DNA from: Podarcis melisellensis
Taxonomy: Eukaryota
NCBI GenBank assembly: GCA_964234715.1
Contig: OZ174278.1
Strand: one strand, 5' to 3'
Length of the DNA: 64,000 nt
Positions 36,601-63,038 of this stretch are shown here, in pieces (positions within the stretch are counted from its first letter, which is position 1; each line of letters begins with the position of its first letter). The notes under the pieces were generated by a model. That model saw only the letters and a program-made list of their open reading frames with translations. It did not search any database and was not told the origin of the DNA. Made by a program: the position numbers and the translations under genes.

Positions 36601-37151
36601 CTTGCCATTTTAACTATCTAGCCTTCAGGCATCAGATGTCAATACACTGCACATTTAGCACCTTTACTTAAAAATAAGTGCTGTTTGAAAATAAAGATTG
36701 CCTTAATTCTTTCTTTTAATTCAGTAGTTAAGCCCATCAGAGATTATTGGCACTTTTCAGGTATAAAAATGTTTGAATGCAAGTTTTTATGTTTCTTGCC
36801 ACTTTTAAGATAGATTTTAAAGAATGCAACCAGTCAATAATAAATCCTAGGTAGAAATGCTGCTGAAAGGATCTGCGTCCGTTTTTGTGATAAACAAATT
36901 CAAATTTGACTTTTAAATTCTAATTCTGTGTCTTAAGACTGCTCACCTGGAAAGTCGCTATGTCTTCAGTTTTTGTTTCCTGTTTTGGGATTGCAGAGGT
37001 GCCTTACTCAGTCTCAATCCAGGGACACTAGGCGGTGCTCTCAGCCCAGCTCTGATGAGTAACAGCACTCTGGCAACTATTCAAGGTCAGTGGACTTTCA
37101 CCAGTCTTCCCATGTCTGTTATGTTTGTGTTTTTCATAGGGTTCTTTCCCC

Positions 37152-37211
<60 letters not shown>

Positions 37212-39146: not shown

Positions 39147-39579
39147 GTTGGACTGAGCTGTGCTTACCCATAGCCTATTTTACTCTGCAGTGAGATGGGC
39201 TGCCAGCTGGGTTTACAAACTGCAAAATGTGATTGGTTTCCTCTCACCGTGTTGCTGGGGACAAGGGAGAGAAGGAAAAATACAAAAGGAAAAAAAAAAC
39301 CAAGAAGAAGGATTTAAAACTGGGACAAACATTTGCCTAATTTTATAATAAACACTGTCTTTTCAGGATTGCTTCATTGACTGGAGAACTTTCTAACCAA
39401 AAATGTATAAAACAAAAAAGGACTACTTATCATTTCCAGCAGTATCAATGACAAGTTAAGGTGGGTTATCAACTCAAACGTAGGAATGGGATTTCTTCTT
39501 TCTTTTTGATCTAAATATCTTTTTTTAATTATCATTTATTGGTCTGTTGTACAGGCCATAATGTCATACAAGGTGTTTA

Positions 39580-39722
39580 NNNNNNNNNNNNNNNNNNNNN
39601 NNNNNNNNNNNNNNNNNNNNNNNNNNNNNNNNNNNNNNNNNNNNNNNNNNNNNNNNNNNNNNNNNNNNNNNNNNNNNNNNNNNNNNNNNNNNNNNNNNNN
39701 NNNNNNNNNNNNNNNNNNNNNN
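39580..39722. other. assembly gap (143 N)
   Basis: run of N. Confidence 1.
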
Positions 39723-42395
39723 GCTCCTGGAACAGTTTCAGTGAGCTCCCATGCCACACAGAGGGAGGAGCAAAGAGAGGGAAGCATGTGAATTGCGAAT
39801 GTTCTTTAGTTTCCTTTTCCCTGGCGGTATGTTTTTCGGGATTCTCTCAGAAGTGTTGGCGGCTAAGTGAACATACAGAGGGTAATGTGCAAAGACAGTC
39901 CATGCTTGTGAGATGGGCGTTCTGATTGGACAGCTGTTTGCTCAGCACACTTGGGCCAAATCTAGCTCTCATTTGCACGTCTTTGGCTCCTGTTGATGCC
40001 AAGGGAGGAAGGATTTGGCCCATAGGTTCTGTCTTCAGCATCTGTGCTGGCCACTGTCTTGTCTCATAATTGCATGGAAATGGCCACTTTACAACTGGGA
40101 ATATTTCTGTTATTTACTTTCTCAGGAGGCTGCCTGTATTGGTGATAATTCATATGCATTCGTTGAACCTTCCTACCAGCTGTTTGGCATAGGATTTCTG
40201 AACGCTGCATTGGTTCATCTCTAAGAACTTACTTTTTCCAGTGTCTCCAATATGATTGTACTGAAAATGTTTTCAACTTAAAACATTTCTATTCCAGAAG
40301 TAAACTAGGTCATGTGAACAAGTACTGTTTTATGCCAACACAGCAGATCGTGCTCCATTCTAAATAGTTTGTAATGTTCTTTGACACTGTTCACTGCTCT
40401 GGAAAAAGTTGGTAAGGAATTCTTGGAAAGCTGACCAGCGTGCCATGGAGAGTGTTGTCTATCTGGTGAACACTGGCATGTTGCATGCGTCTTGCAATAT
40501 TTCATGCTATTTCTGGGTGATGCTGCTGCTAGCTAGATCATTTATGGCAGTAATAAACACCTCTACTAGAGAGGGGGAAATGTTTCCAAGCAACGTAACA
40601 AGTGGTATGCGCAAACAGCTGCTGACAATGGATGAGAGAGAGACTGAAGAGACAAAGATGAACTTAAATGTTATGCTGGTCTGAATCTAAATCTTTTTGC
40701 TGAGAAGAGATTGGATGACTGCAATGTACTTGGAACTTTCCAATCTCTTTTTAAGGTGAATTGAAAAATATCTTCAAGAAGGAGGAGCTGCCCAGTTTTT
40801 CTTTTCACTAAGCCTGGGGAGAAGGGGAGTTCTAACACTCATGTAATTATATTGCATTTCATGCCAAAGGTAATTATTTAACCTCTCATCACCTGATATC
40901 CTTTTATCACCTGATATCATGATGGCAGTAACTTTATTCTCAATTCCTTCTCTGGCTGCTGATCCCAATTCAGAGAGCTGGCATTGATGCTCAACTAGCA
41001 GAAATCTTTGTCTCTTCTCGCATACCGTCATGCTGTTTGCTCTCTGTTCGTCTCTGAATTTCCAACTTCCTGTTTCACAAGCTATTTAAAAATAATGAAT
41101 TCTTCCTAAAACTTTAAAAACTTGTGAACTGTAAGCAGGGAAGTGAGCAAATGTCCGTCCACCGTCTTATGTGTGTTTGGTTTTTTTTAATGTTTTATTT
41201 TTTTAAAACTAAGCTTGAACCAAAGTCAATTTCTAGCAAGCTGCTGTACTAATGGACTAGTTTGTATAAGTGCAGTTCAGATGCAGAGAGGTGATAGATG
41301 CTACTGACAATTTCTTTTCATTTTTTATTTTATATAAAAATTGCTGCTTGTTTTAATCTTTTTTGGGGGGTGGGGGTGGTCTTTTATATATCCTTGGGGC
41401 AGACAAAATCTCAACTTGATTATTATCTAATTTCCGTGGTTTGGTGTGTAAATAGAATGGCAATGGCAGATGGTTACTAATTCAACTGTTCCCACATCCT
41501 CCTTAGCAGTTTGGCTCAATCTATATACTGTGGTGTGACTGTCTCCATGATTTCAGTCTCAGTTTAAAAATATAGGGCTATGAATAATACTGTGTGTTAA
41601 GGTTTTAAGTGGCCCATAGCAACAGCTTGGAGCAGTCAAATGTATGAAAGGATGGCAGAGGAGAGACAGGTACCCACTATGTTGGTCTCAAGGCCATAGT
41701 GTTGACTAGTTTCTACCAAAGGAAATATCAATCCCATGGATTTTTTATTTTATTTTTTTTGTCCATTGAAATTAGATCTATGTAATTGTGTTTTTTGGCG
41801 CACACACATCCATACGTATATATTTTAATAGAGGAGATGGTGATGACTTCTGAACTGTGGCATTTATTTAGCTATGAATTTCAAACATCAAGGAGGAAAT
41901 AAGCCCTTCATATTTATGTACAAAAAATAAAGAGAACACAGCCCTGTAAATTGCCCCAAAACTCTCAAGGATTAAGAGAAGCTGTTTATTCAATTGACTG
42001 GCTGCCTCTTCTTGGGTTCACTGTTTGCAGTTAGAGGACATGATGAATCTGGAACACTAATGTCGCTCAGATGATGGCCATAAAAAATTTGCTGTAGTAT
42101 TCACAGTATTCACATATTGTTGGTGTGAGCACCTTTAATCTTTATTTCTCTTAGATTCATGCCACGGCCACACTACTAGCAGATTTCACAGCAGGTTCTG
42201 GTGAAAGAAACTGGAAGCTCAAAAAACATGCAGCTAAAATGCTTTGGTTGAATTGTATTCATCCTATTTTACATATTCCATTCCTCATATAGCTCATACC
42301 TAATGCATTTATGCTTGTTCCCAGCAGCACAGAGATACCAGGATCTGAATAGCTGTCACTATTTCGTGTTGATCTTGGCTATATATTTCACATGG

Positions 42396-42396
<1 letters not shown>

Positions 42397-42428
<32 letters not shown>
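42397..42428. repeat. (CA)n microsatellite
   Basis: direct reading of the sequence. Confidence 0.92.
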
Positions 42429-42431
<3 letters not shown>

Positions 42432-45192
42432 CTCTTCCCATTCTAGAGCAGCCAGCCCCAACCTGGTGCCCTCCAGAGAACCATTCCCATCAGTCCTAGC
42501 TGTTCTGGAAGAAAGGCTGTTCTAGAGAGATGGATAATCAGCTTCTGCAATACACACTTCAACAGAAAATCAGATCCAGATAATTGGAGAATCTGCCCTG
42601 GAACCTCACAGTTATAATACATTTCTCTTACCACAAAGTTACAAGGATAATCACAAAAGTCATGAACGTTCTGGTATAGTGAAAATTTTCTGGTCACTAC
42701 CAAGTGCAATTCCTGTAATCCAAAACAATGTGTGATACCTGTGTCCCTAATACCCAGTACTAACCATTCTTCCATTACTGCATTAGTTGAACAAATTAGT
42801 CCAGCATTCCAGTGTTCTAGAGATTGTTGATTTTATTTTCATTTTTTCAGTCATGGGTTATTAGGCTGTCATTTCATTTCACACAGTTTCAGATCTGTTT
42901 TGTGGGCCAAAGTCTGAAACGTTTGCTTGCAAACTTGAGAGATTTCAGTACACCTTTCATTACCAAAAAGGAAAGGAGTAGGTTAATCCTCATACCTGCA
43001 GTTTCCACAGTTGCAGGTTATTTAAGAAAATGGCAGAGTTCAGTCCGTGTCCCTTTCAGATGAGTTGGAATGTTTCTATTGATTTTAGAGAAGCCAGAGT
43101 GCCAGAACCTTATTGGGTGCAAATACTACTTCCTTGAAAGGTGTGAAAAATGGGGATATATTGAGCAGACAAACCATTGGCAGATGAGTTAAAACATCTA
43201 AGTTGTGTGCACTTAGGGCCAGTGTGGACACTTTCTGTTGTAGGAGAGTTGTTCTTCCAGCTGAATACATAGCTTATCATACTGATGGACAAACTCACAA
43301 GGTTCATAATTTCAAAGTAAAGTTGTTCTTCCACACCTTTCTGAATCTGCCCATATATACCAATTTGCACATTACATATTTCCATGTATGAGGCTCACAC
43401 ATACAAGTAATGTCTGAGTGTGCCCTTGCTTTGCAGTTCACTGTTTTGGGGGCAGAACGTTCATGTTTTTCAGACAGCGTGTGTAGATATATTTGACCGC
43501 TTCCTTTGTAAGGTTTGTGCTTATGAAGTGTTATAAATGTAAACTATGTGTCATACTCAACTGTGCTTTACCTAGAGTAGACCCATTGAAATTAATGGAC
43601 CTAATGTAGTCGTTGTCCTTAATTTCAGTGCATCTACTCTGCATAAAAATTAGTTGAGTACCACCCTATATCTCTACATTATTTTGCCATCTTGAGAATG
43701 TATAACTGCTCCATATATCTGCATCAGGGTTGGTGGATGGGAGGTTAACCAGTAATTCTGCAGGTCCAAGCAAGTCTTCCAGGCAGTCTACCATCTCAAC
43801 CTTCACTTGAGTGATAGATTGCTGAGACTGAAGAGCAAAGGCTGAGACAACGGTTATATAAGGTAGGGTGGAGTCTTATAGGCTCTTTAGGTCACCTTAT
43901 TATGACCATTTGTAGTGCCAGAGCAGCAGAGATCAGCCCCACTGTTCACTCTTCCTGCATGCTGCCCCAGTAGCACCGGCAGTAAGATGTCTGGGCCATG
44001 AATTAGTTTACCTTGGAGTTAAGCAAGCATGCCTAATGTAGGAATTGTCATTAACCCAGCACACTCAGGAGTACCAGTGCAGTGGATTACAACATATGAC
44101 AGAAATGAGATGGAGACAATTTCTCATAAAAGGGAGGATTTGAAAAGTTTTTGCTGTTTTTCCCACCTACCACCTAAATATGCATGCCACATGAATGTGA
44201 ATGGATGGTGGTCATTTAATGTCACTTCCCCTGATGTATAGAGTTGGATCAGATGTAATACTCCCAATATCTTAACCATGACTAAGGAAGGTGGGCTGCA
44301 GGATCCCTGCGTTCATGTTAACCATGGCTCAGGTGAGTGCCGGCACAGACATTAACCGTGTTTAAGGCTGACAGAAAGAGGGTAGGGAAATGGCAGTCCT
44401 ACAACCTGCTCTGCACTAAGTCTCTTCCTGCTCAGAAACATTACAGAGTTGCTTTACAATGACATATTTATGTGAGTTACAAGAACCCTGGTGCCTGAGC
44501 CTGTGTACAAACATGGCTAGGAAAAGCTACAAATGTGATGTTATAAAAATGGGTCGCTTGGCTGTCCTGTGATGGAAAAGCAGTTGTGAATGGTGAATCC
44601 ATGCTATATTTTAAAAATAACTCCTAAGCTTCAATTGCCAAGGAAAATATCTGATAGGTTAAGTTTAGTTTTATGTTGATCGTCATCTAAGACATTTTTA
44701 CTGGATAAGTTCAACCAAAGATGTTATTGATTGAAGTTATAAAGGAAGAACACAAGTACTTATTGCTGAATTTCCGGTGCCAGAAACCAGGCTTTAAGAG
44801 TCCATTGTTGCCTTATCTCCTTCCCTTCCCTATTTCAGTTGTATATTATGTGGGGTTAGGTTGGTAATATCATGCTTTAACTGTCTTTCTAATTGCTTTT
44901 CTAAAAACCTTGAAGAATGTAGGCTGCCCATTACAAGATAAAGCCTGTATTTTATTTGCTACCACACTGATGGCTTATTTCAGTTAGTGGATGTTGGGCT
45001 ATACTGCAGCCTAAGCAAAGACTGGCTCTGATGCAGTGTTTGGCACCTGAGGTGGAGGGTTCACGTGATTTTTGCATGGGGCATTTATTTATGTTCAGGA
45101 TCTGGTAGGAACTTTGTGAGACCGCATTCAAAATGAACATATTTGCATCAAATATTACATAGGAAGTATGAGCACTGAACAGATAACACATA

Positions 45193-45249
45193 GATTGATT
45201 GATTGATTGATTGATTGATTCATTCATTCATTCATTCATTCATTCATTC
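45193..45249. repeat. compound (GATT)n(CATT)n microsatellite
   Basis: direct reading of the sequence. Confidence 0.92.
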
Positions 45250-48200
45250 TTGTAAGTGATTAGATGTGGGAAAATATCACTCAAGTCTTGCTTTATGAAC
45301 TTTTCCCCAAATTTAAATGTAATCTTGCACTGGTTCCACTGTGGGGCCATACAGTTATGCTTGGGGTTTGAGCTGCAGGGGAAGTTAGCATCACAAGGAT
45401 GCAAAATCCACTAACTGACTTGATTAGTGTTTGGTATAATTAAAGCTTTTGCTATGGCCTTGTTGCTTTTGGAGACACACAAGTGTAGCAGCTATATTTA
45501 CCATACAAGTTCCTTTATTAACCTTTCAGATGACACTTTTGTTACGTAGAATTATTTAACAATATCTTATTGATGGCTATATTTTTCAGTAACATAATTT
45601 CTTGTAATAGAAGTGCACATTTAGGCAGATACATCATTTCAACATATTCATGCTGTTAATGACCTTTTTAAAAAACAACATCCCACGTAGAAGTCTCTCT
45701 TCTGCTTTGAACATGTAATCCTTTCTCTCTGACATTAGGAGTATGTTTATGCTCGATCTGTATGTGCCTACATGCACTTTTTAGAAGATGAATTCTAAAA
45801 GGGTTCTAGAGGTTCATAAATGTATATAGGTATAAACCATTATAGAGAAAACACTACCAAAGGAGAATCTGGCTGGCTGATTATGGTTATTCATCTCTAA
45901 CCAAAACTTCTCAGGACTCGTTAGCCAATTTTTTTACAAAGTTACAATCTAATGTTTTTTAAGCAATACACTCTTTTAAGACATTCACCTGCAAAGTTCT
46001 TGCTCCATGCAGTTATTAGGCCAAGTCGATCTTGCCAATAGGGAGCTTTCTATTGGCTTAAGTGATAAAAGTTGGCTGAGATCCCTGAGCTTCTTGAATG
46101 GACTTTGATGCCAAAGTCCATGCCCTGTATGAACAGCTTCAGAAAAAAAAAAGGAATGCACCTGGAACTAGTGCCAATTTACCCACAGTCTTCTTACTTT
46201 TGTGAGTGTTGTAGGATGGCGTACTGTCCAATTTGTAAACATTCACCCTCCCCAGTGTTGGCTTCACGTTGGGAAGGGCCCTTGAACAAGAGATCTTCCA
46301 TGGGTTCCTCCACCCTCCTCGGTCCCCCAGCAAATCTCCTTTATCACTGGAGCAGAACAAGGAGACTCTTGGCAGTAGAGGGCCTTGGACAGATGCCCAG
46401 CCATGCCAGTCCTCTCTGTCTTTTTCCTGTGTGCCCGAAACATTTTCAGATTACACAAATTTAATCAAAAGGCATTTGATTAATAGTCAATGGAAAAATG
46501 AAACCTATATTTCATTTCCACTTTTCTAGGGAGACTTCCAAAAGTTTAAAATTCTTAATACAGACATCTATATAGATTGTGAAAGAAAACTTGAGATATA
46601 TTGGACCTAGCATTGATTAGTTGCCGCAGCCTATCCCTAATACATTTCTGAATCGGTTTTGCAATGTTGAGTTCAGCCTCACTATCAACAGATCACATTA
46701 GTCTTTAATCCTCCTGGGATAATATGCAGGATAAGAGGTCTGTTCCACACATTTCACTTTCCTACATACAGATATAGCATCCTTTTAGGAAATTGCATCA
46801 TAATGTGCAGTGCCTGTTGCTATTTTATGCATAGACATTCTCTGTGAAGGCAAATTACAGTGTGTGAAGTGACTCTTGAGTCACACTGGAATTAAATTAG
46901 CTTTATTCTCGAGAGAAAGAAAGGTTGTAGTCACACTGCCTGACATTGCTTTACTGCTATGACCTTTACTGACCTTTGTCCAAACATGCGGCATACATGT
47001 AGTTGGACTGAATGTTGGCATGAAGCATGCCAAATGTTTTTGACCCTAAGGAGCAAAATGAAGGCTTCTCCTCTGACATAAATTAGGAGTCTCGTTCCAC
47101 CCCTTCTTGTCTCTCTTTCTGTAAGCAGGCATTGTTACAGGGTTGTAGGAACAATGCTTTTTGGTAGCAGCTGGCTTTCTGGCACCTTTTTTTTATTAAA
47201 AAAAATACCTCAGCATAGCTTTAGTATCATTTGCAGAATGGAAAATCGGCAGAGAGAAACTTTATAAATAATGGAAGTAATTCTAGTTGTAGAGTTTAGT
47301 TTTGAAGACCCTGACTTATGCTGTATGTATTTGCAGTTCTGTATTTAGGCTACAACTTTATAGGGTATGGGGTGGGGGAGGGAAGGAGAGAGAGTTAGCT
47401 GTGCTAGAAGGCAAATGTTGCTTGCAACGTCTTTTCCTACTTTGTCATTGGCTATCGTTGTCAACACGCTACATAACAGCAGACATAACTGAGCTGCTGT
47501 ATTGCTTCCAGGGTCCTTCTAGGTGTGCATGACCTCTGCCTCCCTGCTTTCTTTCTATTGGCAAACCAAGGGCCTTGGTGGGGATGTAAATATTGAGCAA
47601 GTTTGTGTGCTTGGAGGAGGGCATACAAGGAGATGAATTAGCAACCCATTTTAGTCCACGTAGTTGCACTAGGGCTGCAGCTGGGCCAAGACTTTTACAT
47701 TTGGAAAAGGAGGAGGATATTTGGGAGAACAAAGTGAAACAGTTATTTTTATCCCTGCTTGTCTTGTTATTGAATGTAGTATGTGGTAATTAATTTAATT
47801 TTCTAATAGCAATGCTAATTCTGTCTAGACCAAAAATAGCAGAAGAGAAACCAAACTAAATGCTAACCTGCTCCTAGTACCTAAGTATAGAGTACCTGAA
47901 AGAGATAAGATTCTATGATCAGACTTGAGGAGAAAAAAGGATATATTGGATGTGGGTTTCTTTTTATGGAAGGTGAGTCATTTTTCTCTCACAGCACATG
48001 GTTCAGATTTTGGATGGCATTTTGGGGAGACTTCATCTGCTTCCATCCTGACTCTGAAGCATCTCCTTTTTCTGATTGCTGAAAAATACAGAGTGTGTGT
48101 TTGTGCGAGGAAGTATATTTCCAGGGGTGGGAGAGGAAAACCTGAGCTTCAGCTGGAGGGGGAGAATTTCCAATGTTTTGATAGGAACCAAAGGTATACT

Positions 48201-49194
48201 GCTTAGTTTTTGGCAGCTCTGCTGTTTTCAGGATGTCTTCGGCAAAAAATTATGTGGTCTTAGAGGTTTGATTTGATGACTCTTGACTTAGAGAATCTCC
48301 TCATGTGTCGGTTTTCCTACCTTCTTAATGCACAGGGTTGGTTGGATACTTTTTCTGAGGACATGCTGGAGGCAAGTTCTATTCAGTACAGCACCCAAGA
48401 TCACAAGCAACTGTTGGGTGTAGGGAAAACTTGGTTTTATTCTTAAAATATCAAAACTTCATTGTCCTCTTAAATATCAGAATTGCATTGTCCTCTGTTT
48501 CACATCATTTCAGAAATCCTGTGGGTTTTCATAGTGGAAAACCTTGGAGACGTCTTTCTTTCCTCCCCAGAATAGCTTTGGGCATTGTCACATTACATGC
48601 TGTTGGCTTGATGAATTGCATCAATCAAGCCTGACGTGTTCATGTGTGAAGCAAGGGAGAAGGTAAATATATATTAGTTGTCCAGCTATTCTTCCTCCGG
48701 AAATCAGCTGGGTGCAGAACTTCCCTGGAAAGCTTTACTAATAGACTTATTGTTCTGACATTATGTAAAGTGGTATTAATATTGTGTGACTTTTCTAAGA
48801 GCTAGGTAGATTTATAAGTAGGTAATAGGGAAATGGAAAATGACTTCTCAAAGATAAGAGCACTTGGAACAAAAGATGTGGAAAACAAGGTGTGCTTTAA
48901 AAAGAAAACAAATCTGAGGAAGGAAATGAAACAACCAGTTGGGAGATGGGCTCGTGAGAGGAAGATCCTTAGTAGTATGAGGAAGGTTGGAATGTCTCCC
49001 CTCTTCTGCCTTATTTCTCTTTACCTCACTCAGGCGAAAATATGGGTTTAATAGTTTGTTGTCGGCTCTTTCCCCAAACATTTCTAAAACTCTGATCTTT
49101 GTTCTCACCAAAAATTCTCTCTTTACTTTTTACAATGTAGAACCCATCAAAATAAAAGCCTTCCTGAAGTATTTCTAGCAGAAATGTCTTTAAC

Positions 49195-49206
49195 CCACCA
49201 GGGGGC
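49195..49206 (+). promoter_or_regulatory. CTCF-like core motif
   Basis: CCACCAGGGGGC matches the CTCF core consensus; binding unverified. Confidence 0.45.
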
Positions 49207-50662
49207 TATAAGTGTAAATGCTGAATGTTTCTGGCAAGAGTACTACAGGAATAGTGGTAAATATTAAGGAGTACAGATCTGTGTCAAATTAATATTTGCA
49301 CAATTCAAGCCACCCACCCTGGCCAACAGCCTTTGGAACAAACACCTTTGGTCAGGGCTGGGGAGAAACTGTCACTTGTCCCATCTAATCCATGTTAGCA
49401 CATTGGCATTTTCGATCCAGTTTCTGTATTTGAATTTGAGGAAGAAGCCACAGCAGATACCCATAAACTGATTGGTAAGTTACTTCCATTTATTTGAACC
49501 TCCCTATAGGAAGATATAGGCTTTTCTCTAAAATCCAGGAGATAAGAGGTCAGGTGCAAGTGCATTTGAGAGCATCACGGGACTCCGGCCGTTTTGCACT
49601 CCCCTGGTCCCACCGTGTCGCTGTTCCATTTCCTTCTTCTGTGGTAGTGTCTAAGGCTAGGTGTGAGTAAGTGTCGGGTGTTTATCCGCCACAGGTACGG
49701 GAGCTGTCGTATACCTCATTTCTAACTCATAACTGAGTAACTTGCTTTAACTTTCTCCAAACCCTACAGAGTTGCCAAGACTGCCCTCCCTCCCTTGATT
49801 AACGTGGAACTCTGGCTTATAGCACCCTGTGACCTGCAACCTGGGGGGCAACCCCCTAAAGCCTCTGAATGTCGCTGCTTAAAAGCTACTGCAAACTGAG
49901 GGCAAATTGCAATCTTCTATTTCTTTTGGTTACCAGGGGTCCACTCGTAGTCTGTGAATATCCATCTCCACTCCCAATCTGTGCATGAAACCTCCATGCT
50001 GCCTTCTCCCTCCCCCTGGTGAGATGTCAGGGCTATAATGTACTGCAGGGTCAAGGCAGGACCCTGACGGCTCCTCTCAGCCAAGTGCTGCATGCATATT
50101 GCTCGCTACTTTTTAATTTTGTTTCTCTCATGCTCCTCCCATATTTAATTTCCTTCTTTTATTATTTGACAATCTTGTTCCTCCCCATCCCCGCCTCTAG
50201 GCTAACCAGAAGCTGCATCCCTGTCCCTTCTGCCATTTTACTTTGAATGTAGTTTTCCCACCCTTTGGAAAGAGAAGCTTTTCCAGGTCACGGTGCACTG
50301 CTATATGCCGAGGGGGGCGGTTTCTTTGTTTTGTTTTGTTCTTTTAGAAATTTCCAGCCAAAACCAAAGATTTCCTAATGATTGTATAAACTCAAAACAG
50401 ACAAACAAACAAACCAAAGACAAAAGGGGCGTCTTCAGCACCAATCATATCTCTTAAGATGGCGCGGTCCCATCCTGTGCTAACTTGCTTGGGAGACCAA
50501 GTTCTGTTTGACCTCCACAAATCCAAAGGCGCACAGCCATTGGGAGGGAGAGTTCAGTGGGGAAAAGTGATGGACTCCACAGATTGGTTGTGAAGCTGAA
50601 GACATTGGTGCATGACTGGCGGCTCTGGTGGGTGCTTTTAACCCTTTGGGAGCTGGGTGATA

Positions 50663-50731
50663 TTAATACACACTGAGGTGCACTTCTGAGCTCTCCCCCC
50701 CCCCCCCCGCCACTGCTTGGAAGAGGCTGTC
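50663..50731 (-). CDS. CD247: CD3-eta-like alternative terminal exon of CD247 (DSLFQAVAGGGGESSEVHLSVY*), antisense within the POU2F1 3' UTR
   Basis: Acceptor tttttttcagagattttgcacaacag then GAC; phase 0 fits exon 7. DSLFQAV resembles recalled mouse eta DSHFQAV. A shifted frame downstream reads STHQSRQSCTNVFSFTTNLWSP, against mouse STQQSSQSCASVFSIPTLWSP. Confidence 0.6.
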   Translation of the reverse strand, partial: DSLFQAVAGGGGESSEVHLSVY

Positions 50732-52131
50732 CTGTTGTGCAAAATCTCTGAAAAAAATGTTTTGTTTTTCTTTCTCTCCTCCCCCCACTTCTTTTTTGTT
50801 CTTTAATTATTTTTGCAGCACCACTGTGCAACTATGCATTGTATTTCTCAACCTTTTGTGCTAGGTAGGTAGATGCCTATGACTTTTTAAACTTTGGGGG
50901 AGGGGGGTTGCCAATGAAGGAACTTTTTACATGGATCTTTTAAATCTCAGTTGATTAGGGGGTGTTTGGTTCTAGGGTCATACAAGCTCTATCCCAAAGC
51001 AAAATCCAAATGTTAATAATATTAGCCTGATGCAGATACCAAAGATAATTTCTTTCCTGCAGAACCTTAGACTTGTGTATTAAGTACAATTACCCAGCAC
51101 TTGCATTAGTCTAACCTCAGTAATTCCAAAGCTTAGATGTATATTTTGGTATATTTCTGGGATATTAAAAATGTCGTTTAAATTCTTGTTTGTTTCAGTG
51201 TAATGCTCTTAAAGTCATAGCATGGAGATAACTGAATTGTCTTATTCTTAGTAGTTTGAAATAATAGTATTTTTGTATGTTTTGGGTGTGTCAATGTATG
51301 TATTAACACAACAGTTTTCACTGCCTAGGTGTTCATAATTGAGAAAAAGTGTACATAATCTGTGATTTCCACCAGATTGTCGATTTAGATTGCATTTTCT
51401 CTGATTGCCATTCCCAACAGGGAGATCTTTATTCCTTTTTTTTTTAAAGAGACAGCATGCTTATAACAGTGAGATTGTACTTTTGCCCTCCCATAAAGGT
51501 CCAGTTCCCTGAAAACATCGTCCTTTAATTTTGAAAGGTGAGGCAAGACTCAAAGTGTAGCAATTGAATAACTAAAAGCACGGATATTACTATGCTAGGA
51601 ATTTATGCTTTTTGTTTTTATAGTGGGGGGGAGGCATCTTGCCAAGAAAGCTATGGTTTGTGGAAATTGATTTATAAAATCCTGAGCTCTTCCTATGGCA
51701 AAAAAGAGATTTGTGTTGATTACAGAGCTTCCCTGTCGTCAACCATCAAGTTGGCTTATTTCTTCCTCAGGCCTGCTAATGTGGTCAATTGTACAGCTTA
51801 ATTTACATGAACACTTTGTATCTAACTGTGATAAATATATTAAGATACAATGCATTCTTGCCTAACTTTAAATTTGATAACTGTAAGGCCCTAATTTGAA
51901 ACTGTGTGTGTCTCCAAAATGGAGATGAAAAGGATGCTGTCTCTTTAAATATACCTTCTATTTTTTCCCTAGTGGCTGCCTACAGGTGGCTGTGGGCATT
52001 GAGAGAGACTGTGTAGATTATAGTGAATCAGGATGAAAATGGTAGATTTTGTGTAGATGCATTTGTCTGCTGTAATTTTTATATATATAAAACTTACTGT
52101 AACTGTACAGTTCATTTCTGTTGTAAACATC

Positions 52132-52185
52132 ATTAAACCATTTTTCCAAGTGTTTTAACATGCATGCACTGGTTTGTGGTTTTTG
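52132..52185 (+). terminator. putative distal poly(A) signal of POU2F1
   Basis: ATTAAA at 52132-52137, several upstream TGTA elements, downstream GU-rich tggtttgtggtttttg. Confidence 0.65.
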
Positions 52186-52833
52186 AACAAGTGAAAGGAA
52201 ATGGCTGAAAAGAAATGGCAGAACCTTGTATTTCTGTTGTTTTAAACCTGACAATCCGGAGCTGAAGGATGTTCCTCCTTATTTTCTCCCAACTACAAAT
52301 TACAAGACATCTCAGGTTAGAAGACTCACATAATTGGACAGCAGAAACAGGTAAGCCTCTCAGTTCTGTTATTCTGCAGAAAATAAATATGCCAGATTTA
52401 TTTTAAAAGCTTACACTACTAGTAACTTACGGCTTCCATGTTGAACAGGATGTGTTAAATTCTTTCAGTTAAGTAACCACCATGTGCAGGTTGTCTAACT
52501 AGCTCAACATCGTAATGCACATTTATTTAGTATTCTCTACATTTGTGTCCTTGACAAGATAATTTGTTTATTGCTACAGGCGCATGTTTCATGCATACTA
52601 CTAGTTTGGTCCTATAATAGATATTGCTGCCCTTCTAAACTGTCCTAAAAGTCAGTGATGTGAGATCTGTGCACCCTTGTTTAGCTTTAAATCTTAAGGT
52701 TTTGTAGGACTTATTGCTCCTTTTCATTAAGCTCTTTTTCCCCTTTTACTTTCCACTGCAACATGGCGCTATGAAGTTCAAACGAATCCAGAATAAGACC
52801 AGAAGAGGGAAAAGCAGGTATATTTAAGAAGCT

Positions 52834-54495: not shown

Positions 54496-54564
54496 CTAGT
54501 AAGGAGGTGGTAGGGGCTGCATTTGAAGGACATCGTATGTATCCTTCGTTGCTTTGCTGAGACC
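54496..54564 (-). CDS. CD247: CD247 exon 8 coding part (GLSKATKDTYDVLQMQPLPPPY*)
   Basis: ctttatcag acceptor, TAG at 54498-54496, completes ITAM3. Confidence 0.96.
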   Translation of the reverse strand, partial: GLSKATKDTYDVLQMQPLPPPY

Positions 54565-57500
54565 CTGATAAAGAAAGATGAGATGACTCAAAGTTATAAC
54601 TAAATCAATATAACTGTAGTTATTAATCAGAAGTACTAAGTCCATATGCTCCTTCTAAAAATAAGTCCAACAACTCTGGCTTTCTATCCAGAGTAAATAA
54701 AGGTGACAGGCTGATACTCATAGCAAGGCAAAAGTCCTGCTTAGGAGATGAATATGACCGGTCCATTGTTTGTTGGAGGAAACAAAGTTGTATACTGCCC
54801 TTAGAAGCGCCTCTGTACTTGTTCCTTCACAGACTGCATTAACACCTCTGGGCAAGCAAAAATATTATCTTAGGTGGCTCAAAGTGAGGAACAGGGCACT
54901 TGCTCTGTTCTCCCATTGTAGAAAGGTGATCCAAATTGACAGGGTGCATGTATGCCAGAAACTAATTAAAGCAAAAGCAAACAAGATTCCTGTGTGAGCT
55001 GTTTTTGTGCAGCTTGCTTCCATAGGATTGTGACCCTGAAGTTTGTAGGGAGATAGGCTTGCTATCGCTGTGCCTTACCTGATAAACTGTTTCACTGCCT
55101 TTGCCACGTCGTCTCTGAAACAAAGAAGCCCAGCATCAATACAAAATCTCCCTGCCAAAATCTTTTTGCCCATGCAAATAATGGGAGGCTTGCTTCTGAT
55201 TGGTCTTTTAAGAAGGTGCTGCACAATCTGACTCAACTGCCCCTTAATCAGTAATAAATAAAAATTATAAAGCACAGAAGTGTCATTCAAACAATATCAA
55301 AAGGGTGAGGAGGATACTATAACTTCTGTTTTGCTTGACAGTACTGCTTTAAATAAAGGGTAGGAAAAAAGCAGGCAGAGTAGTGCCTGAAGCCACCTTG
55401 GCACCTTATGTGTAGAGCCAAATTGGCAAGAAGTGTCACTTACCTCTCCTTTCTTTCCAATTTCGCTGTATGCTTCAGCCATCTTATCCCGCTGTAGAGC
55501 CTGGCCATGGAAGATCAGAAAATGGTGTCAGCACGAATAAAATTAAAGTACTGTACTGTTTTCTGTCATACCACTCCTCTTTGTCAGAGATAAGAAACCA
55601 TGGACTCTCCCTCCAGATGTTCTTCCAGCTCACATCAACCCCAGCAAGCAATGTCCAGTGGTCAGGGACGATAAACATTGTAGTCTAGCATCATCTAGAG
55701 AGCCACCTACAGGTTCCCTATCCTTGCTACATAGATACAACAAAACAATACTTTCCCTGTGTTCATTCATGGGAGAGGAGATGTGATTGGTGGTCCAGAC
55801 TAAGGCAATGTTTCTTCCTTCACATTGCAGTTAGACTTGAAAGAAACCACTTGTTGAGTACAGTAAAAAAAACTCCTTTCAAGTCTACTTGCAGAAGTGG
55901 GGATGCTGCAGGCCAGATGGGGAGACCCTGCAGGTCAGCACTTACTCTTGCTTTATACTCTCTTTATTTGGTAATTCCCCCCCATGCCAAATAGGTCCCT
56001 GCTACTCCCATACTACAGACATGGGAGGATTTCAATGTTGCACTAATTGAGCATCCCTTGGTGGGCATAAGGAAAGGGCAGGAAGCCTTGTGGCAGGTCA
56101 CACAGCAGATTGCTGTAGTCAACAGTACTTCCTCCTGTACAACAAACTTGCACTACCACAACTGGGGCGGGTGCTGGGGAATACTATCCCACAGAACAGG
56201 TTGGGGGAAACTCTGGCCCTCCAGATGTTGCTGAACTTCTGCTCCCAACATCCCTGGCCATTGGCCATGTTTGCTGGGGCTAATGGGAGTTGGAGTCCAT
56301 CATGATATGAAGGGCCAATGGTTTTCCCATGCCTGCCATACAGTCTGTTCAATTGCACATTCTACCTTTCATTAATGGCATACAATTCATTTGAAAAGTG
56401 ATTACATGGAGCCTTATGCTTTGCTTTCCTAAAGTTCAGTGCTTGTGACTTTGGAACCAATTGCTGATACCGCAGTAGCACCTCAATGCCTGAGAAGCAG
56501 CAATTCCAGCAATAGTTTTTCTTCTCTCCCTCAAGTTACACTAAGGGAGGGATGCAGCAGCTAGATAGAAACAAGGAGTAGGAATACAGAAGATAAACCT
56601 AGCTGGGAGAAGGCAGAGAGAGGTTCGTTTACACACCTCACAAGGAAAGGAAATAAGCTATTTCATGACAGCTGTTTGCTGAAGCAGAGGAAAACAGATC
56701 ACAAACGTAGCATGCTGCTGAAATGGCATAGGAATAGACATGCACACGTGGAAAAAAAGTTTGCATGCAGGTGCAGAAAACATTAAAAAGAAAGAAAAAA
56801 TGGACTCCAGCAGAGTGAGGCTAAAATGCAACAGGAATATCAGTTTTTGTAAACCAAAGCAGACTGCTTTAGGGGTTCATTAACAGCATGAAAATAAGCT
56901 GGGTCTTGAAACACCTTCTGGGAGAGGTATTTGGCACCCATGGGCTCACAAACAGTCAAACAAATAAACTGGCAAATTGTCATATGTGTGCAAAAAGAGA
57001 TAAATTAATGAGGGTGATGCCTACATGGTAGCACAATTTACTTCCCAGTGTTGTTTCAGATGTCTTTAGGTGGGTTTTATGTGAAGGCGGCTGGTCATTT
57101 TAGAAAACTGAAAAGCAATTTAGAAAAATTCTAGACAATATGGCAAGAAACCAAAACGCTTTTCTGAAATGGTAAGTTCTTACCATGGTTTTACTTACAC
57201 TGTAAACTCTGTCCTGAGCTTGCTTTCTTCTGTGCTGAAAAGGGGAGGAAAAAACAAGCAGTTCTTGCAACTGTTCTTGCAGACAATATCAAAAAAATTA
57301 TTTGGGGATGTGCAAGGCATTGCAGAGATTCTTACATAGATGCTAGTCTTGGATTAGTCACAAAATTTCTAGCTGCATTTGACGATGCATGAAGCGTTAT
57401 CCTGAGATGCTGGTATATGTACACATGGCAGTGGGAAGGGGGCTATCAACATCTGTTGATAGAACTGACATCCTGACATATATAATGTGTGAACGATCCT

Positions 57501-60500
57501 TTGTCTCTATTCAGTCCACAGGCTATGGAGCTGAAACATTGCAATTTAGTGGCTTAATCAAACCACATGTGTGTGCTCCCACCCACCCACCCCAGTAACT
57601 CAGAGTAGCACTTCATGCACCTAAGGAAGTGGACTGTAATCCACAAACCTTATTCCATCCTTAATAATAAATCTATTAGTCTTTAAAGTGCCATCAGATT
57701 CTTTGCTGTTTTAGGAGAGGCCAGGGATGCCATGTCCCAGTGGCTGCCTAAGCTGGGCTGACATTTTCTCTGCACAGAAAAGAGGACCAGGATGAGATGA
57801 GTGAAGGTACCTGGGCTTTTCCCCCTCCTTCAATGTCAGCATCTGTCTGTTTCGCTCCCAGTGATGCATATTCATCTCTGGTTCCATGAGACAATCTCTG
57901 AAATGAAATATATAGATAGGGACATTTACAAGAATGACAGCTCATTGGTAAGTTGCAGTCCCGAGCTCCTAAGGGGCTGACCGGTACTGTGTCTTCAAAA
58001 TAGACTCAAAAACAAACAAGAGCTCAGTGAATCACATTCTGTTATGTTAAAACCATCCCATAAAATCCTGGTCCTAGACTCAAGTTGCTAACACTTTCCC
58101 CAATCCTTCCGCAGTCAAGGGATTAATTAAGAAACAGAGAGTCCATCTAGTCCAGCATTATTTTCTCTCCGTGGCCTATGCTGAGCGCAACACTCTTCTG
58201 GACCATACCTGGGTCATACCAGGTATTCAGAGGCATACTGCCCCCAATGCCAGAGGTAATACAGCCATTGTAACTAGTAGCTGTTGATGATCTCCAGGAA
58301 TTTGTCTAGACACCTTTGAAAACTCATAAGTTGGTGACCATCTGTACATCTTGGGGCTGCAAATCCCATAATTCAACTCTGTGTTGTGCCGAGAAGTACT
58401 TGCTTCCTGAATCTCCCACCATCCACCTTTCATGGGATGCCAATGCAGGCTTCCCAGTGACCTCTCATATAAACCCTTCCACTCACAAGGGCCGTCCAAT
58501 TATCCTTTTCTGCCAATTATCCTTCTCTCTACTACTGCAGGGCTGCCTCTCATTGCAGGAGAGAATAGCCATAGTCACAGTCCCATGCACAGCCCTTGTA
58601 CAACAGGCCTCTGTCTTCACCTTCCTTCTAGCATTAGAGCCGCTGACTCTTATACTAAACAGGAAACCGAGCTGGCCACACATAGAGTCTTCATGGCAGC
58701 AACATGGTGTAAGCTGCACGTGCAAGCTCATTCTTCTAGCAGGAGCCAACCAGAATCTCTTGATTCTAAACAGGAAAACAAGGTTAACCCTGCTTTCACA
58801 TAGGACACTGCTGTGAAGAACTCATGTAGGTCGCGCTCTCTCCTCCTTCAAAGCCCACAAACCATCTGTCTCTAGACTTTAGGCCAGAATAGGACCACTA
58901 TATGTGTAGCCATTTCCCCATAACTACACAAGGCTTCCCTTGCTTATTGACTGATTTAAGAATTTAGAAATTGCTCTACAGTAAAAGAATGCCTGAGTGG
59001 TGTACAAAAATAGACTGTGGGTGGCTTATCAGCTATCCTGGTCCAGAACTGTAATATGGCCCAGGAGCAAACTGGAAACTCATGCAATGCTTTCAACAGA
59101 GGTGTCATATGTTGACAGGTTGCCCCACAGTCCAACAATAGCTGCAGTTTCTGGACCAAATTCAATTTGGTCCAGTTTCTGGACCAAATTCAAGGGCAGC
59201 CCCATGTAAAGTGTGTTCCAGTAATCAAGCCTAGAGGTTACCAATGCGTGGGCCGCTTTCTCCAAGCCACCCCTGTCCAAGAATGGTTGCAACTGCCAAA
59301 CCAGCCCAAGCTGACAAAAAGCACTCTTGGACATGGAATACATCTGAGTTTCCAGTGGCAATGCCCCAATTACACAGCTACCCAGAACAGCTGATGGACC
59401 AGTTTCCTGGACCTAGGAACCACTCACCCACAGTGCCTCCAACATGATTGGCAGCTGATTGCCTGGCACAATCCCCTCTCAGCAATGGGCATACACCTGG
59501 TTGGTTGGGAGATGATTGCCTGTGGTGAGCACCTATCAGATACTTGCTACATTCCAGTTTTGGGCTATTGACATAATGGAGGAATGTGCAGAAGTAACAT
59601 GCAAAAGGTAAAGTATGGGTGGGGCAATGGAGACACTCTTGAGTATTTCTGTACATATTATCAGAGCAGAGCACTGCCATCTCTTTCATAGCAAATAGGT
59701 AAGCCAGGTAAGCCAAAGGTTGCCTTACTCTAGACTTTAATCTAGTGATTGAAAATAGAAGAATACGCTTGAGAGTGCTGCCCTATCCAGAAACTCCTTA
59801 GAAGGTATGTTTCTTTCAAATTCTTAAAGTGGGGAAGCAGCAAAGCAAAACCACTATTTTAATTAGTATGGAGAAGATCACACACTGAAAGACAAGAGTA
59901 TATTCCAAATGAAATATAGTTTAAATCTAGTTAACTGGGAGGCGATCTACTGGATGCTGTAATTTCATTTGATATAAAACTGGATCTGCATGCTCCTCAT
60001 TGTGGAGGGGCTGCCACCCACACTGTGCTTTGAAGTACCAACTATTGGGGCTTCAAAGTGCAGCAGCATCTGACATCCCTAAGACCACCTGTTTAATTTG
60101 GTCCACCAGGAGAACAGATTAAGATCTGGTCCACCAGACAGAAAAGATTCTCCACTTCTGATTTAAACCTAACTCCTGAGACCCACTACTGATACCTCTA
60201 TTGCCAGAAGATCTCACTGCCATTAACTCTCCCCCCTTGCTAAGCTGGGGGAACTTGAGAGGACTCTGAACAAAAGGGGTAATGAATTTTTAAAAATCCA
60301 TTTAGGATTTGCCCAGACTCTGGAGGAGTCCTAGTTGAATCTTGAGGGCAGATCCATGAAATCTGGTCTCATTTAATTGTCTGTCCTATTATAATTATTT
60401 TATTTTATTTGTGAAATAAAAATCATTCAATTTCAAGAAGACATAAGTTTAGTACTTACATTATATAGGTCCTCTGAATTCTGAGAAGTTTGAGGTTCAG

Positions 60501-63038
60501 GAGAGCCTTTGCCTATCTGGAAAACACAAAGCCCATTTCTATCTCTGAATGTGACTTTAACAGGATAATTTCTGCTAGTGATTTATAAATGGTGCTTTAT
60601 AAACCCACAACCCACACATTTCATGGCGATTCCAATATTCTCTTGTTCCCAAATTCAAATAATGCCAGTTATGTAAGTGTATGAAAACTGCAAATTAAAG
60701 ATGCACGTAAAAATGTAGATTCATCATAGAATTTCTAGATCTTTGGTCATCTTTTCCTAAACTCTCAGGAACTATGCATACATTGTGATATGTAGAGCAC
60801 CAAGCCGTTAAGAAGATCAAACATGTTTTAGGATATTAATAGAGTACTGAAAAGCTGCTCTGCAATGTTCTTGCAATCTTATCCTAACTTTATTTGCAGC
60901 TAAACAACCTCCTAGTGGCAATGGTAGAGATTTTACCCATTTGTTGGTAAATGGAAAAACGGTTCCAAAGTAAGTATTGTTCATCAGGCACCTTTTAATG
61001 GCAGGTATGAAATCTCAAATTTCCAAGAGGGAAAGTGTTTTGTTTTGTTGTTTTGTTTTTAATTAGTTATTACTAAAAGTTTTCTTGTGTAACAAAGAAA
61101 GTACATATAGCATCTCCGCTTTCAGTTCATAGAGTCTTTTTCACAGTTCGTTTACATTTGGTACGAAGCACCGTTGTCATAGACATTATGCGGGGGGCAT
61201 AAGTGGCAGAAAAAACTACACTCAATTAACTTCTCTCACAAAAAACATGAATAAATTCCAAATTCCTGCACCTCCCATCCTCAGAATGATGGGGAATTCC
61301 CAACACAGAACTATACTATATCACTTACGAAGTGCACCACATAATCCCATAGAAGACGGAATGAAATGAATGGGTACACATGGAAATAGATAAAACCAGA
61401 AACACCCCCACTAGAGTGTACACAAGAGAGAAAGTTGCATTGAAGGTTGGCAACAGGACTGCATCTTTCCTTCTCTCTCTTTGTACTTCTTGTCTCTGTA
61501 TACACTGCTTACCTGTGTGTGAATATGAATACAGAGTGGTAAAGGCAAAAGATTCAGTCTTTACATTGATAACTCAGCTTGCAAAGGCGTCACCTGAGGA
61601 CCACAAACAGCAGCTGCCACCATTTCAAATGTCTTTCATTAGGTTTGAAGGGATGGTTTTTGCTTTTCACTTGGCCAATATCTGGGGCTGGAAGCAAGCA
61701 GCTGGTTGTCAATTGACTTACTCCTCGATCAGAATCTCAGTGGTAAAACAGAGAAACCCTTTCACTAGGGTACTTTTATCATGCCCTCCCTAATGATCAC
61801 CATCTTGACTCGGCAATGGGCAGAAGTTTTGACTCCAGTAGTTATAAACAATGTGTATCAGGCAGTGGGAATGTAAACCAATTTCTTTACCCTCAGGCTA
61901 GCTCATGAAGGGTTTCCAATGTTAAGATCAGCTGTTTTCTGCTGGAGGCAAGCATCGCGGCCCCTTCTTGCCAATTTTGGCCACTGCCTATTTTCACTTC
62001 TTCATTTAAAGCTTTCTTCTTCTGTATTTAATGCCAGTGAGAAAAGGGACCAAGTTTTCTGTCATACTGTTGCTTCCTGCTTATAGATCAGCAGGGGGAA
62101 CTTCCAGCCCATCTGCCTCATTAGGTCAGCCACACTTCTCCATTCGGCCCGCAAGGCCATTTCGGCCAAGCCACACCCACACAGGACTGAACTCTGCACA
62201 TCAGCAGATACACAGGATATTCAGGTGTATATGGTTTCAGAGAGAAAAAAGTCTCTTGAGCCAAATGTAGAAGACTGGCAGGTGAAGTTTAGCTTGCAGG
62301 CCAGAGATTTTCCACCTGGTCCTAAGGAATCAATGAAGAGACCGCAAAGTGCCAGGCATCTCCAGTGACTTCTCAGGATACCCTCCTTCAGGAATGGGGA
62401 ACCTGTGGTCCTCCAGATGTGGCTGGATTTCAACTGTCATCACCCCAGGTGCCCAAATCAGCATGGCCAGTGGTCAGGGGTGATGGGAATTGTAGTCCAG
62501 CAAGGACACCGGTTTACCATCCTTGGACGACTTCCTTGTTCCATCTAGCAATCCCAGAAAGGGCTTGGGAGGATCTAGCAAGTTTAAAGAAACCTACTGC
62601 TGAGTGGTGAGAAGTTCCTTAGCACAAGGCATCTTTGAATTCCTGAGGTTATACATGACTGTATAACCATTCAAAACATTGTCCAGCATACCAGGTGACC
62701 AATGGAATGCTCTGTTGAAATGCTGAAGTTTCCAAACACCATGGTTTCTCAAATGAATCCAAGTGCCCAACAGCTCATCAGTACTCATCCTTATTCTCAT
62801 GTTGGAAAAAGTGGGTGGAATTGGTGCAGGAAATTGAAGACACAGAGTTTACAAATAAAAATAAAGTTTCCCAGGTCATTCCTTGTATGTTAAAGATCAA
62901 GTGTCTTCCCATTTTAAAGAGGCTTAGGACTCACCTTTAGTTTTACGAAACAGGCTGTGATGATTATAGCATAAATCAAGAGGATCCCATCCAGAATGTA
63001 GCAGAGTCTTGGATCTGTCAGGCCTAGTGCATTGGCAT
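54496..63038 (-). CDS. CD247: T-cell receptor CD3 zeta chain, spliced CDS complement(join(54496-54564,55079-55114,55444-55500,57199-57234,57811-57897,60460-60516,62935-63038)); exon 1 outside window
   Basis: Seven exons with canonical splice sites encode the TM (DPRLCYILDGILLIY) and three ITAMs (YNRL-x7-YASL, YSAL-x8-YSEI, YQGL-x7-YDVL). The tail-to-tail position next to POU2F1 matches known synteny. Confidence 0.97.
55079..55114 (-). CDS. CD247: CD247 exon 7 (RRRGKGSETVYQ)
   Basis: tgtttcag acceptor, gtaagg donor, 36 nt. Confidence 0.95.
55444..55500 (-). CDS. CD247: CD247 exon 6 (ALQRDKMAEAYSEIGKKGE)
   Basis: ggccag acceptor, gtaagt donor, 57 nt, DKMAEAYSEIG hallmark. Confidence 0.97.
56197..56355. 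mobile_element. hAT-Charlie-like MITE (related copies near 55590-55725 and 62389-62525)
   Basis: cagg..ggggaa.ct.tggccctccagatgttgctgaact...cccaacatccctggccattggccatg...gctaatgggagttggagtcca pattern recurring in the window. Confidence 0.7.
57199..57234 (-). CDS. CD247: CD247 exon 5 (HRRKQAQDRVYS)
   Basis: ccttttcag acceptor, gtaagt donor, 36 nt. Confidence 0.92.
57811..57897 (-). CDS. CD247: CD247 exon 4 (RLSHGTRDEYASLGAKQTDADIEGGGKAQ)
   Basis: catttcag acceptor, gtacct donor, 87 nt, completes ITAM1. Confidence 0.92.
58130..58450 (-). mobile_element. CR1 3' fragment
   Basis: gtccatctagtccagcat, attcagaggcatactgcc, agttggtgaccatc, cctgaatctccca; similar to the start of the 25965 element. 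Confidence 0.7.
58840..59400 (-). mobile_element. L2 fragment
   Basis: SAFCQLGLVWQLQPFLD, HALVTSRLDYWNTLYMGLPL, HMTPLLKALHEFPV on -. Confidence 0.85.
60460..60516 (-). CDS. CD247: CD247 exon 3 (IGKGSPEPQTSQNSEDLYN)
   Basis: ttttccag acceptor, gtaagt donor, 57 nt, first Tyr of ITAM1. Confidence 0.92.
62389..62525. mobile_element. hAT-Charlie-like MITE
   Basis: caggaatggggaacct...ggtttaccatccttg imperfect TIRs. Confidence 0.7.
62935..63038 (-). CDS. CD247: CD247 exon 2, ectodomain and transmembrane (DANALGLTDPRLCYILDGILLIYAIIITACFVKLK)
   Basis: ttaatgcag acceptor, gtgagt donor, 104 nt; CYxLD dimerisation motif with TM Asp. Confidence 0.97.

Follow-up and report, generated by a model that had tools for sequence, protein, structure and literature searches.

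In the closest described system, the T-cell receptor (TCR) signalling chain CD3-eta arises from CD247 when exon 8 is replaced by exon 9, a form that has been seen in mice and in swine (PMC8416054). According to the titles of two mouse papers (Ohno 1994; Koyasu 1994), Oct-1 (POU2F1) is transcribed from the strand that lies opposite the CD3-eta locus. Our literature searches found no report of CD3-eta outside mammals. Here we analyze 64,000 nucleotides of the lizard Podarcis melisellensis (GenBank assembly GCA_964234715.1, contig OZ174278.1; this whole stretch is called the window), in which an earlier reading of the DNA, the original prediction, had proposed a CD3-eta-like alternative terminal exon of CD247 at positions 50454-50760 of the − strand, antisense to the 3' untranslated region (UTR) of POU2F1. 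From sequence comparison we estimate a probability of roughly 80% that these positions are instead a piece of a long POU2F1 3' UTR, read on the + strand, and that their likeness to eta comes from conservation of this UTR and not from a conserved TCR protein tail.

In position and strand, the lizard site resembles mouse Cd247 exon 9, the CD3-eta terminal exon. On the CD247 strand it follows zeta exon 8, it is antisense to the 3' region of POU2F1, and the exon order of the window (7, zeta exon 8, candidate) is the order known from mouse. Exon 8 sits between exon 7 and the candidate, the candidate acceptor is 3.8 kb downstream of exon 8, and the candidate region falls 11.3-11.6 kb past the POU2F1 stop codon. 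Exon 7 ends ...GAAACAGTTTATCAG/gtaagg at 55079 in phase 0 (donor CAG/gtaagg; slashes mark exon boundaries), and the − strand reads ...tttttttcagagattttgcacaacag/GAC at the candidate site, with a putative exon start at 50731 whose phase is compatible with this donor, just as the original prediction had described. The start ACAG/GACAGCC..., which gives DS(L or H)FQAV, is likewise that of mouse exon 9, the mouse sequence itself lying outside our comparison, and splicing into the site would remove the third immunoreceptor tyrosine-based activation motif (ITAM3), as in mouse eta. The lizard differs from mouse eta in that no frame is kept beyond codon 7, the open reading frame (ORF) stops after 22 codons while relatives continue in other frames, and the splice acceptor, with an upstream AG in competition, is the weaker of the two. 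The elements concerned are as follows, with identities here and below given in the order cobra/starling/bat.

55079..55114, − strand: CD247 exon 7 (RRRGKGSETVYQ)
54496..54564, − strand: coding part of CD247 exon 8 (GLSKATKDTYDVLQMQPLPPPY and stop), the zeta-specific half of ITAM3 plus the stop codon
50748..50750, − strand: competing CAG acceptor 16 nt upstream of the proposed one, directly behind a T7 tract, with an exon start at 50747
50732..50733, − strand: AG of the proposed eta acceptor, kept in all seven species compared, including lacertids, cobra, starling and bat
50663..50731, − strand: 22-codon ORF with its TAA stop (frame A, DSLFQAV...SVY), the TAA at 50665-50663
50711..50731, − strand: first 21 nt of this ORF (DSLFQAV), without any difference among six sauropsid sequences (from three lacertids, cobra and starling)
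50695..50708, − strand: G14 homopolymer that determines the frame
50580..50662, − strand: conserved blocks 2-3 (the PKG ... LWSP region), at 88/83/60% identity, in a frame that differs by species
50454..50831, − strand: mechanical 125-aa ORF (frame C), the source of the candidate's lower coordinate
50158..50163, − strand: AATAAA about 570 nt past the acceptor, conserved in sauropsids; read on the + strand, an AU-rich UTR motif

The tail behind the acceptor at 50731 differs from species to species in both length and frame. Read in phase 0, it is DSLFQAVAGGGGESSEVHLSVY and a stop in Podarcis (22 aa), 16 codons in cobra and 29 in starling (both read off the alignment), and 68 codons in the bat Rhinolophus ferrumequinum (translated). 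In Lacerta agilis it has 29 aa in the second frame, while the tail of Zootoca vivipara, which uses the third frame, is at least 100 aa long. Three lacertids with about 96% identical DNA are therefore found in three different frames behind the first seven codons, because the G-rich stretch differs in length by non-multiples of three, and a G14 run that sets the frame is evidence against coding. The three colinear blocks quoted earlier (DSLFQAV..., PKG and STHQSRQSC...LWSP) do read as quoted, with PKG and a stop in the second frame and STHQSRQSC...LWSP in the third; PKG is additionally encoded in frame A (ccc aaa ggg), right behind the frame A stop. Neither exact look-up nor homology search in the protein collection, where an isoform of more than 219 aa would escape the length limit, found a relative of the 125-aa frame C ORF, and a search with the starling protein P0011 found no other protein among 5.8 billion that shares its DSLFQAV-type tail. 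Taken together, the alignments and translations indicate that the − strand is under no coding constraint beyond the first seven codons and holds no conserved eta tail.

The DNA itself is a different matter. Similarity to eta was tested with the coding sequence (CDS) of an eta-like CD247 model of the bat, in place of mouse eta. This model (P0058, KAF6292573.1) ends ...GLYQ/DSHFQAV... with an eta-like tail of 68 residues, and its only significant matches in all 64 kb are 50731-50712 (E 0.003) and 50637-50592 (E 1.6e-6), which are colinear. Over 50 residues, the bat tail can also be aligned to frame A of the lizard (E 4.7e-4), though only by passing the lizard stop codon. Since the two matches are colinear and found nowhere else in the window, the resemblance to eta goes far beyond chance, and the alignments identify the lizard stretch as an ortholog of the mammalian eta-exon region, so that the alignment to a mammalian eta exon on which the original prediction depended does exist. 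The candidate could otherwise have been a chance product of AT-rich DNA, a short ORF that a random AG happens to precede; ORFs of 110-166 aa are frequent in the window, and one of 22 codons is unremarkable. This explanation is refuted by the bat matches, and six other genomes agree with the window in synteny and in the flanking blocks, which leaves chance with a negligible probability.

What is shared with the mammal is, however, narrow. In the alignments ACAG/GACAGCC(T or A)CTTCCAAGCAGT is invariant, and indels of 8, 4 and 1 nt follow immediately. The bat has one clear change within the first 21 nt, T to A (L to H); the lower bat score of these 21 nt in our identity profile (1.0/1.0/0.9, precisely 0.90 for bat) is caused by a gap that MAFFT places at the last base. 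Bat and lizard DNA are orthologous here, and the bat eta-like CDS ends 8.6 kb from the end of the POU2F1 CDS, but the bat ORF runs for 68 codons and the bat is without the upstream TTCAG acceptor of the sauropsids. The frame in which the bat reads the distal block also differs from that of the mouse peptide given in the original prediction. The proposal that the eta exon dates to the amniote ancestor therefore stands for the homologous DNA, the AG and the first 21 nt, and is not supported for the coding unit, whose frame is lost after seven codons. A search of the protein collection with the bat tail returned one more protein (P0073), a 151-aa unspliced ORF from mammal Logan runs; this ORF continues across the eta acceptor (...SHKQDSHFQAV...) and shares the frame of the bat tail.

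The per-base identity profile of the window against cobra, starling and bat shows that conservation is not centered on the putative exon. Behind the first 21 nt, identity falls to 0.71/0.73/0.46 in the remainder of the 22-codon ORF, rises to 0.88/0.83/0.60 in blocks 2-3 (50662-50580), drops to 0.44/0.28/0.35 at 50579-50454, and is back up to 0.96-0.98 at 50400-50351. The most prominent feature nearby, a near-ultraconserved block of 518 bp (50822-51339), lies outside the putative exon, and for CD247 it would be the intron just upstream of the acceptor; it holds no ORF of at least 55 aa on either strand. The putative exon is not a unit of conservation; it is one block among many, and not the best.

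These blocks form a chain. Against starling, bat and cobra, blastn blocks are colinear all the way between the POU2F1 stop and about 52190, for example 523 bp at 91.8% in bat, 938 bp at 87.7% in cobra and 1389 bp at 80% in starling. The CD247 coding exons are much weaker in the same comparisons (53-125 bp at 70-92%). Conservation in all comparisons stops near 52160-52190, just behind an ATTAAA at 52132, and besides an invariant CATTAAACC the surrounding + strand region (52040-52190) contains several UGUA motifs and, downstream, a stretch rich in U/GU, which together have the textbook form of a conserved poly(A) site. Between 39147 and 52131, AATAAA and ATTAAA hexamers number 8 on the + strand (about 15 expected) and 33 on the − strand (about 23 expected), a four-fold asymmetry. 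The candidate thus lies past the POU2F1 stop codon and short of a poly(A) site of the same orientation, in DNA that is conserved at the nucleotide level regardless of frame, tolerates indels, and is depleted of + strand hexamers. From this conservation and these signals we infer that the POU2F1 3' UTR extends from 39147 to about 52160 with the candidate stretch inside it, in agreement with the antisense placement that had been proposed. The corresponding features are listed below.

39144..39146, + strand: POU2F1 stop codon (ORF 38724..39146)
39147..52160, + strand: putative POU2F1 3' UTR, about 13 kb, a chain of colinear blocks common to cobra, starling and bat
50822..51339, no strand assigned: near-ultraconserved 518-bp block, identity 0.96/0.95/0.92
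52132..52137, + strand: poly(A) signal ATTAAA, which does not vary among four amniotes

The lizard region compares closely with other long conserved vertebrate 3' UTRs that have distal poly(A) sites with UGUA/CFIm-type elements. It is like them in the distance of about 13 kb from stop to ATTAAA, in blocky conservation that tolerates indels, in the depletion of + strand hexamers and in the UGUA motifs before the signal, and nothing in it is different in kind; its special point is that the antisense strand can be borrowed by a convergent immune gene. It is also conceivable that the conserved blocks are DNA elements, a cluster of developmental enhancers or insulators downstream of POU2F1, with the − strand ORF incidental, and conservation of the 518-bp block at 92-96% across amniotes is typical of developmental enhancers. 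We consider this very unlikely, as the blocks keep their order starting at the POU2F1 stop codon and end abruptly at the ATTAAA/UGUA/GU-rich module, the four-fold hexamer depletion affects the + strand only, and the mouse paper titles cited above place Oct-1 transcription opposite the CD3-eta locus.

Several further observations concern this region. Within the 518-bp block, lizard, cobra, starling and bat have 50 nt (51101-51150) without a single difference, and an ATTAAA at 51164 (+) may serve POU2F1 as a proximal poly(A) site. The boundary seen in the wider comparisons recurs among lacertids, with 96% identity below approximately 52.49 kb versus 86-88% in the zeta 3' flank above it, and lacertid megablast alignments break at 52491-52727, between the POU2F1 side and the CD247 3' flank; an indel or repeat located where the 3' ends of both genes leave a gap is the probable cause of the break. 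No Rfam family was found in 39-56 kb, and tandem repeats had no bearing on the candidate. A run of 143 N bases (39580-39722) occurs early in the 3' UTR of POU2F1.

The signals that CD247 splicing would have to use are poor. For the acceptor at 50731 the pyrimidine fraction is 0.47 and the zone free of AG is 14 nt long, and it is weaker than every one of the seven real CD247 acceptors of the window, which have pyrimidine fractions of 0.65-1.0 and AG-free zones of at least 22 nt. The upstream CAG (50750-50748), with values of 0.53 and 22 nt, is better placed and would bring the long frame C in frame. Its TTCAG is common to lizard, cobra and starling, and is the one used by the starling gene model. 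The 30 nt before the acceptor, where the branch point and polypyrimidine tract are expected, are poorly conserved (identity 0.60/0.63/0.23), and eight − strand poly(A) hexamers lie between CD247 exon 8 and the candidate site.

Deposited annotations were also compared with the candidate. The only sauropsid protein with a DSLFQAV tail is a starling "hypothetical protein" (P0011; CD247 model KAI1242427.1). In this model an internal AG is the way into exon 8, which is read in a shifted frame; a GT that the zeta stop codon forms serves as the donor, and the upstream TTCAG as the next acceptor (18130-18250 and 21810-21930 on its locus). The model is probably an artefact of ab initio prediction. The L. 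agilis annotation contains no eta-like isoform from the acceptor at 50731, the longest CD247 product being 167 aa versus 174 aa for an eta-like one. In Zootoca there is likewise none from this acceptor (longest 236 aa versus at least 245 aa), while a product from the upstream AG would have about 235 aa, compatible with the longest recorded length of 236 aa. Zootoca isoform X1 (XP_034972267.1, RefSeq) lacks ITAM3 through retention of intron 7, and read-through of intron 7 in the Podarcis window (54962-55078, −) gives, as in Zootoca X1, an open tail of 38 codons (VRHSDSKPISLQ...CFN and stop). Like eta, X1 is a zeta chain that ends after exon 7 without the second half of ITAM3; unlike eta, it needs no downstream exon, and it provides an alternative, annotated route to a two-ITAM product.

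These data bear on the possibility of a genuine eta-type terminal exon, in which exon 7 would be spliced to 50731 or 50747 and the function would lie in the loss of ITAM3 while the tail drifts. Such an exon would be consistent with the phase-0 donor and the AG kept in all species compared, with an AATAAA about 570 nt further on, like that of a terminal exon, and with the fact that all frames terminate without restoring an ITAM; eta is reported in mouse and swine (PMC8416054), and the bat model employs the site. We nevertheless judge it unlikely. The acceptor is inferior to all real ones of the gene and has a competitor 16 nt away, its polypyrimidine and branch region is not conserved, intervening − strand poly(A) hexamers precede it, L. 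agilis and Zootoca have no recorded isoform from it, with Zootoca X1 arising by intron retention instead, and tail length and frame vary among lizards of one family. It is improbable, judging from the same sequences, that sauropsids make a zeta without ITAM3 by splicing into the conserved AG, or into the TTCAG that precedes it by 16 nt, with selection on the splice site and ITAM3 loss only and a tail that is free to drift within UTR-constrained DNA. The earlier suggestion that lizards may make a two-ITAM subunit from the candidate exon is possible but unsupported, and we regard it as doubtful.

Some of our observations weigh against assigning the stretch to the POU2F1 3' UTR alone. No change is seen in the AG and the 21 nt behind it among six sauropsids, and hardly any in bat, which fits a maintained terminal exon, and so does the sauropsid conservation of the − strand AATAAA at 50163. 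Two deposited gene models, bat P0058 and starling P0011, use the region, although the starling one looks ab initio. A function needing only the loss of ITAM3 would not demand a conserved tail. Finally, the extent of the 3' UTR rests on conservation and signals, not on transcripts. Set against these points, the frame is lost even among three lacertids, the acceptor is weak, and conservation is off-center from the exon, and a conserved eta protein is therefore unsupported. The original prediction had named as its own fallback that the conservation reflects POU2F1 3' UTR function only, and frame instability together with off-center conservation makes this the better reading.

The wider locus agrees with the placement of both genes. 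On the + strand, the last coding exon of POU2F1 terminates ...TTTTASKAQ at 39146; a simple repeat of the (GA)n type, one frame of which reads RERERE..., follows a POU2F1 coding exon at 37100-37250 (+). The remaining CD247 exons of the window are:

62935-63038, − strand: CD247 exon 2
60460-60516, − strand: CD247 exon 3
57811-57897, − strand: CD247 exon 4
57199-57234, − strand: CD247 exon 5
55444-55500, − strand: CD247 exon 6 (exons 2-6 span 55444..63038)

The CD247 exons of the window match zeta isoform X4 of Podarcis raffonei residue for residue. They were searched separately, and exon 2 as a query returned 72 CD247-family representatives, with the 90% cluster of the best match consisting of lacertid zeta chains; the record P0053 proved to be a zeta transcript only. 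The genomic loci compared with the window were those of starling, bat, cobra, L. agilis and Z. vivipara, and in all of them CD247 and POU2F1 stand tail to tail. The bat locus has the same layout as the lizard, with a 765-aa POU2F1 that carries the Pou, Homeodomain and POU2F1_C domains. The sense-antisense arrangement, which had been proposed to extend beyond mammals, is thus borne out across lacertids, cobra, starling and bat, and these comparisons show an amniote-wide convergent layout with an eta-homologous block inside the putative POU2F1 3' UTR.

If the stretch belongs to the POU2F1 3' UTR, a simple course of events can be proposed. Blocks of this UTR have stayed near-constant across amniotes, presumably by binding factors for the processing, stability or translation of POU2F1 mRNA. 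The constraint would act at the RNA level, and POU2F1 transcripts would run to 52.15 kb in the lizard, ending near the ATTAAA. With CD247 converging tail to tail, the reverse complement of one such block lies 3.8 kb past zeta exon 8. This block happens to contain ...ACAG/GACAGCCTCTTCCAAGCAGT, and the − strand AG and short ORF would be by-products of the UTR constraint, which rodents, and reportedly pigs too, may have exapted as an eta exon.

This reading offers an origin for the odd mouse eta exon, whose acceptor and first seven codons would be the reverse complement of a POU2F1 3' UTR block fixed in the amniote ancestor. Since that block was already fixed, eta appears to have been exapted and not to be an immune isoform of ancient date. 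The reading also carries the caution that peptide-level resemblance within conserved UTRs is not to be read as coding homology. Should sauropsids after all use the AG, an eta-type two-ITAM subunit would date to the amniote ancestor. For reptile immunology, the sequence-based support for a conserved two-ITAM zeta from the candidate exon is removed, and intron 7 retention is the annotated ITAM3-less form to look to instead.

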